From Ranitomeya imitator (taxonomy: Eukaryota), in contig NC_091290.1 in NCBI RefSeq assembly GCF_032444005.1, forward strand, positions 132,680,001 through 132,744,000: 64,000 bases of DNA, read 5' to 3'. Made by a program: the position numbers and the translations under genes. This document shows, in pieces, positions 56,878 through 59,800 of this stretch (within the stretch, counting starts at the first letter, position 1; each line of letters begins with the position of its first letter). The notes beneath the pieces are model-generated. The model had not been told where the DNA came from, made no database searches, and saw only the letters and a list, made by a program, of their open reading frames with translations.

Positions 56878-59800
56878 GTAAGCTAATGGCCATCCTCTAG
56901 GAAGATCTGCTGGGGTGTGTGTGGTCCAGGTCTACGGTCAGATGATGACACATTCTCCGGAATCTCTGCAGCTTCTGTGATGAATCCATATTTGAACCCC
57001 TTTCAGCCTGATGACTGTAGACCGCGACGTTTGATGGAATTATCGCTTTTTGTCAGCTAGATCACTTCCTGCCAGTTTTGAGAAGTCTTAACTTTTATAC
57101 ATGTGGGGGTCTGATGTTTACAACCCACACTGATAGACAGAACCCTCAACTTTTACCTCCGCTCCATTCATTCTCCAGTAATTGGTAGTCCTATAGAGTA
57201 GTGGTCAAGCGTGCACGCTAACGGGGGAGAAATTGGTTCCATCGATAAGAGTCCACCTATCCCATAGATTAGGGGATCACATATCTTCACTGGACTACCC
57301 CTCTAAGTGGAAGTTAATACAGAAAACCATGATCTGCGTGGCTTTTCCCGTACTACGCCACCTTTGGTGGTAGATCCTAACGTGCACTCTCTTAACCCAA
57401 ATAGGCGCAAGACGCGTCAGGCCAAAGCCCGCCTGATAGCTCCAAGGCCCGTTTCAGGACCAGTCAGGCCAGTGGTAAGATGTCCGACCGTCAGATACCA
57501 CACAAAGGTGCGACTTGGAAGAGGCTTCAGTCTGGAGGAACTCAAGGTGAGCTGGCAAAATGGCTGTCTGTAAACTTCAATCACTCCTCTGCTACCAAAA
57601 GATTTTGCAAACGAACACTATGCAAGAGATTAATCAAAACCAACGAGATCTGTGGTGCATTGTTATGCCTAATTTTTCTGAAAAAAAGTGGCCTAATAAT
57701 GAACTACTGGACTTTTTTTATTCCTTTTTATATGACTGCAAATCTTGCGTATTGTGTACAGATGTAGCGGAGACCTTATATTACAACTCTGACGTGTGTG
57801 AACTCGGCCGCGTGATGACAAATCTCCGGAATCTCTGCATTTCTGTGATGATTCCCTTGAACCCTTTGTTCTGATGGCTCTCGGGTTCGGTCATCCATCT
57901 TAACGGCTTTAGTGTACGTTGTATTTTAACAAATTGCTTTCATGCAGGCTGCTGGTATCAACAAGAAGATCGCCCGCACTATTGGGATCTCTGTGGATCA
58001 TCGTCGCCGCAACAAGTCTACAGAAGCCCTGCAGGCCAATGTGCAGAGGCTAAAAGAGTACCGCTCCAAACTGATCATCTTCCCACGCAAACCCTCCGCT
58101 CCCAAGAAGGGAGACAGCTCTGTAAGTACTGCCATATTATCTGCTGCATTATGGAGCTCATGGACATCGCTTTTTCTAAGACTGATCACCTGCAGATTGC
58201 TTCAGTTGTTTGTTCTCATCCCTCTATCCTCCCATGTGCATTGATACCTATGGTCAGAGGATGCATTAAACCCTCTTAAATAATCTTATACCAACGTTTT
58301 ATTTCTTATTCCAGGCTGAAGAATTGAAGATGGCCACCCAATTTAAGGGCACGATCATGCCGATCCGCACTGTAAGTTCTTACCAGTTTTCATTCCTGAT
58401 GACTTGGTTGTGTGGGGAAGGGGGGGGGTAGAGGTTATACACTTGGGGGAAGGGGGTGGCAATAGGACAGAATATGAAAAATTAAATTTGCTGCTCAAGT
58501 TTTGTCCCTATCCTTTTGTCAATTCAGTAGATCTTTGAATTGTAGAATATGGTGGTCACTTCTCTGTAGAGGAAAACGATGCAGACTACGTCATGGTATA
58601 TCCTATAAGAGACTCGGAGTATCAAGCCAGAGTATAGTAAAATGTAGAAAAGTTAATTATTAATCACACAACATAAGAACTAATACATAAAAAAAAATAG
58701 AAGATTTGAGGCAAAGGCACATGGTGTCAAAGTTACACATCTACAAGCATAATGACAGGCATGGGGATTCAAATAAATCAATGGTGTCCTTAGAGCTTCA
58801 CAAAAGTGGTGATATCCTATAAGTAAGATAGATCAGGGAAAATACCACCAAATGATAAGAATAACATGGTAATCAATTTATACATGTACCATGACGTTTA
58901 CATAAAGATAGCAGCAGCAACAACCACGATGTAAAGACATAAGTAGCAGTTTTGAAGTCTTTGGAGGCACTATCTTAGGGAAACATAAAGTAAATAATCA
59001 AGTAAGATGTATCTCACCCATGGTAACCTGTAAGTGAATGTGCAGATAGCAGCAGCCCCGACGCGCGTTTCACGTGGGGGCTGTGATTCCTTGTGTGTAA
59101 AGGCGACTTTATATAGATGCTGGAGGTTACGTCCAGGGGTAACGATGGACGCTGAAAAACATTTCACGTTCGGGCTGTGGTATGGCGCATGCGCGGTGAG
59201 TGCCAGCATCATGAATGACGCTGCCTCAGACGCTCGCAGCGAAACAGCTGATTTGGGGGAAATCCTCTGACATCAGAGATCCACACGTCACAATTGAGCG
59301 CTGTCGGCAACATCGATTAACATCCGCCTCATGCGTCCGCACCTGGAAGGAAGACTTATCTCACCCATGGTAACCTGTATGTGAATGTGCAGATAGCAGC
59401 AGCCCTGACGTGCGTTTCACGTGGGCTTATCCGTGGGGGGGAGTGGCTGTGATTCCTTGTGTGTAAAGGCGACTTTATATATATATATATATGCTGGAGG
59501 TTACGTCCAGGGGTAACTATGGACGCCGAAAAACAGGTCTCGCGTTCGGGCTGTGGTACGGCACAGCTGATTTGGGGAAATCCTCTGACGCCCGAGAGCC
59601 ACACGTCACAATTGAGCGCCGTCGGCAACATCGATGAATATCCGCCTCATGTGTCCAGCCCGTGCACCATCTTGATAAAGGGCAACAACTCTGGCAATGT
59701 TATAAGATGCAGAAAGCCATAGGAACAGCATAACTATTCGATATGGGCGTCATTTAAGATGGTAGATCTAAGGATATGATGCGAGGGCCATATAAGGAAA

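Follow-up and report, generated by a model that had tools for sequence, protein, structure and literature searches.

SNORD68 genes have been listed across vertebrates by Makarova and Kramerov 2011 (PMC3349704, Additional file 4). The gene is single copy in mouse, rat, dog, platypus, and chicken, and multi-copy in Xenopus tropicalis (3 copies), opossum (2), lizard (2), zebrafish (3), and fugu (4) (PMC3349704). In X. tropicalis, where the copies are named 68A, 68B, and 68C, the middle copy, 68B, is annotated "second antisense element disrupted" (PMC3349704). In lizard, the losses are reciprocal: 68A has its second antisense element disrupted and 68B its first (PMC3349704). The zebrafish and fugu copies are annotated as guiding a neighboring site, by a shift of 2 nt (PMC3349704). 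Several copies with a decayed or shifted second guide are already known, having been published for Xenopus, lizard, and fish.

Other studies approach these genes from the side of their targets. Delhermite et al. 2022, drawing on Deryusheva et al. 2020, enter "68 (2 different copies), 68x" against the X. tropicalis 18S site, whereas their 28S entry is "68 (2 different copies)" without 68x. Shao et al. 2009 describe a chicken SNORD68 homologue in intron 2 of RPL13 and assign it to 18S alone. Both Makarova and Kramerov and Deryusheva et al. report that snoRNA copies are more numerous outside placental mammals; by their account, one change is enough to redirect or inactivate a guide.

Human snoRD68 targets SSU-428 and LSU-2388, in agreement with the human baseline of the earlier note on this DNA. 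Human 18S U428 is Xenopus U393. At the canonical 28S site, Am1886 in X. laevis (human A2388), RiboMethSeq yields a score of about 0.88–0.90; the next site on the X. laevis map is Um1900, and none lies two bases downstream of Am1886. The X. tropicalis site list tabulated with that map passes in the same manner from Am1878 to Um1892. In the zebrafish RiboMeth-seq catalogue, LSU-A2388 carries no methylation, and SNORD68 is presumed to be retained for its other guide. Methylation of human A2388 is fractional, according to a paper whose D'/D labels are reversed relative to the sequence, the chicken assignment, and the Makarova tables. Across vertebrates, the 28S guide is thus the half of SNORD68 that can be dispensed with.

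We analyzed a 64,000-nt stretch of DNA from the frog Ranitomeya imitator (the window), in which the earlier note had described a pair of SNORD68 genes; the paired observation is confirmed. Rfam cmscan over the whole window returned exactly two matches, both to RF00324 snoMBII-202, as SNORD68/HBII-202 is called in mouse. Copy A matches at 56944–57030 (+ strand, 56.9 bits, E 9e-10) and copy B at 57813–57895 (+ strand, 60.5 bits, E 9e-11). Membership in the family is judged by a full-length match scoring at least 40 bits, the gathering score of RF00324; both copies score above this value and cover model positions 1–84 of 84. A permissive Rfam scan (E up to 1) detected no further SNORD68 copies in 54000–64000, and a blastn-short search with A and B as queries recovered A, B, and the stretch around the D' guide where they match each other, with no third copy. 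In their cores, the two copies match at 55 of 70 aligned columns, whereas the intron sequence that flanks them is unalignable between copies.

A SNORD68 is recognized by a C box (RUGAUGA) and a D box (CUGA) joined by a terminal stem, with internal D' and C' boxes, and both copies have this organization. The C, D', C', and D boxes are intact in each, and C, C', and D equal the consensus. With its terminal stem, copy A occupies 56929–57023 (+), as placed by the Rfam match, fold, boxes, and distances, and its core lies at about 56937–57015 (+) within RPL13 intron 2. Its stem has 12 bp, formed by 56929–56940 with 57012–57023 in both the minimum free energy (MFE) and centroid folds, and its boxes (+) are C at 56942–56948, D' (CTGC) at 56966–56969, C' at 56977–56983, and D at 57008–57011. 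With its outer stem, copy B occupies 57800–57887 (+), as placed by the Rfam match, fold, and distances. The outer stem has 7 bp, formed by 57800–57806 with 57881–57887 in both folds, and is supplemented by inner pairs; the boxes (+) are C at 57812–57818, D' (CTGC) at 57835–57838, C' at 57845–57851, and D at 57871–57874.

The host is RPL13 (eL13), whose coding region runs from 56774 to 62169 (+) by exon-by-exon translation. The coding part of exon 2 (56774–56877) is followed by exon 3 (57405–57546), exon 4 (57948–58121), exon 5 (58315–58371), and exon 6 (62011–62169), all on the + strand. Translated singly, these exons give a model of 211 codons over exons 2–6 that reads as eL13, and all introns between them are GT-AG. 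Exon 6, searched by itself, matches the last 27 positions of the Pfam model Ribosomal_L13e at 16.9 bits, below the cut-off. Intron 2 (56878–57404, 527 nt) hosts copy A and intron 3 (57547–57947, 401 nt) hosts copy B, both in the sense orientation to RPL13, which is the location expected of the family. In these respects the earlier description stands: it had proposed two complete C/D snoRNAs of the SNORD68 type, which now rest on above-threshold Rfam matches with intact boxes and stems, and had placed them in RPL13 introns 2 and 3, with which the GT-AG gene model agrees. It had also reported identical D' guides, and the stretch that comprises the D' guide, a single spacer base, and CTGC is the same in both copies. 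Finally, it had reported D guides that differ, with that of copy B 2 nt shorter, as is seen in their geometries of 14 nt (A) and 12 nt (B).

Several features of the surrounding DNA were recorded. About 9–10 kb upstream of RPL13, an open reading frame at 46603–47100 (+) contains an AAA ATPase match (PF00004, 25 bits). In human, SPG7 lies upstream of RPL13, and this reading frame would fit an exon of an SPG7-like gene. RPL13 intron 1 holds a tract of almost 40 nt at 56307–56345 that consists of T except for one G. Intron 5 (3.6 kb) carries 178-nt direct repeats at 58420–58597 and 61183–61360, 81% identical and 2.76 kb apart, which bracket most of the intron and look like the two ends of an inserted element. 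Between them, 59000–59660 is a tandem duplication of a unit of ~350 bp, with 90–98% identity. On the minus strand, a cluster of long overlapping reading frames at 36187–39329, the longest of 492 aa, may be decayed repeat or low-complexity sequence; a Pfam search with the two largest found no match. A run of N lies at 13672–13818 of the window.

The D' guides of the two copies point to 18S. Pairing tables place the 11-nt guide of copy A at 56954–56964 (+), separated by 1 nt from the D' box CTGC, and the same guide in copy B at 57823–57833 (+), ahead of the D' box at 57835–57838. Against an 18S target segment that we take from the human sequence, with published SNORD68 and SNORD100 guides confirming its 3' part, the guide of copy A is Watson-Crick paired at +2 to +13 (−20.7 kcal/mol) and that of copy B at +2 to +12 (−20.3 kcal/mol). 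In both, the fifth nucleotide upstream of D', the position that defines the U428 guide of SNORD68, falls on U428 (human numbering). The earlier claim that both copies keep the 18S site is upheld by these 11–12 contiguous pairs. From them we infer that both copies serve methylation of the U428 equivalent, a function apparently conserved across all vertebrates.

A second contact with 18S is conceivable. The UUGAACCC block of the D-guide region (56992–56999 in copy A, 57857–57865 in copy B) is complementary to 28S and to 18S too. Its 18S complement abuts the U428 target duplex on the 5' side and extends over 8–9 bp, at −12 to −13 kcal/mol. Van Nues et al. 2011 place HBII-202 among human snoRNAs with conserved extra base-pairing beside the methylation site. 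If this is the same element, the extra 18S pairing of UUGAACCC could be why copies with a broken 28S guide retain the block. Other 18S targets for the D guides themselves were considered and rejected, as they offered only 6–7 bp in the methylation register.

The D guides tell a different story from the D' guides. Their 28S target segment is GGAGAAGGG, in which the first A is the canonical site and the shifted site is the A two bases downstream. We take this segment from the human sequence, in place of this species' rDNA. It is consistent with the published GAmG context at LSU-2388 and with the complementarity of the Xenopus guide, and it also fits the Am-14-Um-7-Cm-2-Gm spacing found in human and X. 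laevis. Guides were judged by an empirical rule from the zebrafish RiboMeth-seq catalogue, which asks for at least 9 pairs, almost all Watson-Crick, at +2 to +10. Both D' guides conform to this rule, whereas both D guides depart from it, copy A by 2 mismatches and 2 G:U pairs and copy B by 1 mismatch and 2 G:U pairs. Neither copy has a D guide that sets +5 on 28S A2388 with full complementarity, as the dual-guide SNORD68 of mammals and Xenopus 68A and 68C do. Such a guide is also missing from the accepted SNORD68 genes X. tropicalis 68B, chicken SNORD68, and lizard 68A, so its absence has no bearing on family membership. As judged by this pairing, no RPL13-hosted copy in this frog carries an intact, rule-conforming 28S guide.

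The reading we favor, and hold to be probable on balance, is that the locus contains two old SNORD68 paralogues that both guide 18S, with D guides that bring about little or no 28S methylation, and that this is an ordinary state for a non-mammalian locus. Processing of the RPL13 pre-mRNA would free both snoRNAs from adjacent introns for assembly with fibrillarin into snoRNPs, and both snoRNPs would guide the same 18S methylation at the U428 equivalent. The second (D) guide would be evolutionarily labile, with that of copy A in the canonical register with two mismatches and that of copy B shifted 2 nt by its geometry. Both D guides would most likely yield little or no 28S methylation.

The strongest competitor, a possible but distinctly less probable one, is a division of labor as in X. 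tropicalis, in which copy A still guides the 28S Am at A2388 (X. laevis A1886) and copy B serves 18S only. The D guide of copy A (56994–57007, +, from the pairing table and duplex energy) has the 14-nt geometry upstream of its D box and sits in the canonical register: +5 falls on A2388 (human numbering), 12 of 14 positions are paired, and the altered bases at +1 and +2 pair with the 28S target. The canonical site is about 0.9 methylated in X. laevis, this RPL13 has no third copy with an intact 28S guide, and weak guides sometimes work: Deryusheva et al. describe some snoRNAs with weak guides as active when tested. Against this, the mismatches of copy A, A opposite G at +3 and C opposite A at +8, lie inside the +2 to +10 core, where mismatches are rarely tolerated. 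The duplex reaches −13.4 kcal/mol, 8 kcal/mol weaker than the canonical Xenopus guide (−21.8 kcal/mol), and the match is modest, as 134 of 2000 same-letter shuffles pair as well or better. The earlier note was right to place copy A in the human 28S register with a C:A mismatch; it had overlooked the second mismatch, at +3.

Improbable, in our judgment, is an active D guide in copy B that methylates A2390, which would make this a lineage-specific or relocated 28S site of the sort that Makarova and Kramerov proposed for the fish paralogues. The D guide of copy B (57859–57870, +, from the same kinds of evidence) has the 12-nt geometry upstream of its D box. It pairs over 9 contiguous bp (+4 to +12), +5 included, with +5 on 28S A2390, 2 nt downstream of A2388; the 9 bp and the 2-nt shift agree with the earlier note. 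The geometry is that of the zebrafish and fugu copies for the neighboring site, and only 57 of 2000 shuffles pair as well. Yet next to the target +3 is mismatched and +2 and +4 form G:U pairs (as does +1), so that the +2 to +10 rule fails, and the duplex energy is only −13.1 kcal/mol (zebrafish shifted-type guide, −15.3 kcal/mol). The X. laevis map and the X. tropicalis list pass from Am1886/1878 straight to Um1900/1892 with no site 2 nt downstream. The 9-nt match is, moreover, inherited from the ancestral guide, and selection is not needed to explain it.

With no rule-conforming 28S guide among the RPL13-hosted copies, the methyl group may have been lost or moved. That the conserved 28S Am has in fact been lost in this frog lineage, or been moved two bases downstream through copy B, seems to us a long shot on the sequence evidence. 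If true, an rRNA modification site would have changed recently within the anurans, at a time that could be dated. As both 28S guides are imperfect, methylation at the conserved Am site may be weaker or displaced in this frog; if so, it would be a small natural test of how far box C/D guides tolerate mismatches.

The position of each copy in its intron may bear on whether it is processed. The optimum, reportedly found by Hirose and Steitz in 2001, is roughly 70–80 nt upstream of the 3' splice site. The D box of copy B ends 73 nt upstream of the 3' splice site of intron 3, which fits the route of position-dependent snoRNP assembly, with Aquarius/IBP160 bound some 50 nt ahead of the branch site. 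The least credible account, that one copy is a dead pseudogene from which no stable snoRNA is made, can draw on the D box of copy A, which lies 393 nt upstream of the 3' splice site of intron 2 and far from the favored position, but the 12-bp stem of copy A is a known compensation for a distal position, and in both copies the Rfam threshold is exceeded, the C, C', and D boxes agree with the consensus, a terminal stem is present, and the 11-nt 18S guide is kept without a single change amid unalignable intron sequence.

A third copy may have left a trace in RPL13 intron 4. At 58248–58267 (+), a 20-nt match to the 5' stem of copy A is joined to a degenerate C box, with a marginal local alignment score of 24; among the controls, 14 of 500 shuffles and 12 of 500 windows of real sequence score as well (about 3 in 100). 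Downstream of it there is neither a D' guide nor a D box nor a 3' stem. Intron 4 is the intron where X. tropicalis would hold its third SNORD68, and the segment may be a decayed relic of a third copy, on marginal sequence evidence.

The earlier interpretation as a whole is partly supported. It had suggested subfunctionalization or a lineage-specific innovation, to be given up if two copies proved standard in non-mammalian vertebrates. The published copies of X. tropicalis, lizard, zebrafish, and fugu show this to be the case: several RPL13 SNORD68 copies are the published norm outside placental mammals, and the suggestion is not supported. Beyond annotation, the significance of the locus is small. 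It is a further example of a documented rule, by which non-placental vertebrates have several snoRNA copies in the introns of a single host gene, with second guides that drift, are disrupted, or move by 1–2 bases. The species-specific points are modest, namely that there are two copies only and that neither has an intact 28S guide.

One of the closest known systems is that of X. tropicalis (Makarova and Kramerov 2009/2011). As in 68A, 68B, and 68C, the copies here reside in RPL13 at consecutive positions within about 1.8 kb, share a common D' guide with the D' box CUGC, and have a 14-nt D-guide geometry in the first copy and a 12-nt geometry in the second. The counterpart of 68B, whose second guide no longer matches 28S, is the second copy here, copy B. 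The two frogs differ in copy number, since this frog has two copies (with at most the marginal intron 4 relic) and X. tropicalis three. They also differ in the state of the guides: the A-type copy here has two mismatches in its 28S guide whereas 68A and 68C are perfect, and the B-type copy here retains 9 pairing bases whereas 68B retains 6.

These types were assigned from short motifs compared by eye with published sequences. Copy A resembles X. tropicalis 68A in the 5' stem motif CUA(C/U)GGUCA, in the 14 nt from the GAACCC block to box D, and in the 10-nt spacer between the C' box and that block. Copy B resembles X. tropicalis 68B, chicken SNORD68, and lizard 68A in its CGUGAUGA C box, in which the C box is preceded by CG, and in a spacer close to UUCCCUU (6–7 nt). 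The D box is followed by UGG in copy B, chicken, and lizard 68A, and by UGA in X. tropicalis 68B. The 12-nt guide geometry is shared by copy B and 68B, whereas lizard has 13 nt and chicken 14 nt. If the by-eye assignment is right, both types would predate the split between amphibians and amniotes. On that assignment the 2-nt shift would belong to the 12-nt geometry of the B type and would be no new invention.

In zebrafish and fugu, as in copy B, the GAACCC block and the D box are 12 nt apart, which places +5 on the adenosine two positions past the canonical one. The shifted guides of fish have no mismatch from +2 to +12 (−15.3 kcal/mol), whereas copy B has its mismatch at +3 (−13.1 kcal/mol), and the guide of copy B differs from the fish guide for the neighboring site mainly at +3.

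Lizard 68A and 68B, like the copies here, are two copies at one locus with diverged guides. There, 68A lost the 28S guide and 68B the 18S guide, whereas the 18S guide is kept in both copies here. Human SNORD68 (HBII-202) and mouse MBII-202 have in common with this locus the family, the RPL13 host, and the 18S U428 guide, and copy A shares the human 28S register. Placental mammals differ in having a single copy with a 14-bp 28S guide, and in mammals the D' box is CUGU, where the two copies of this frog have CUGC.
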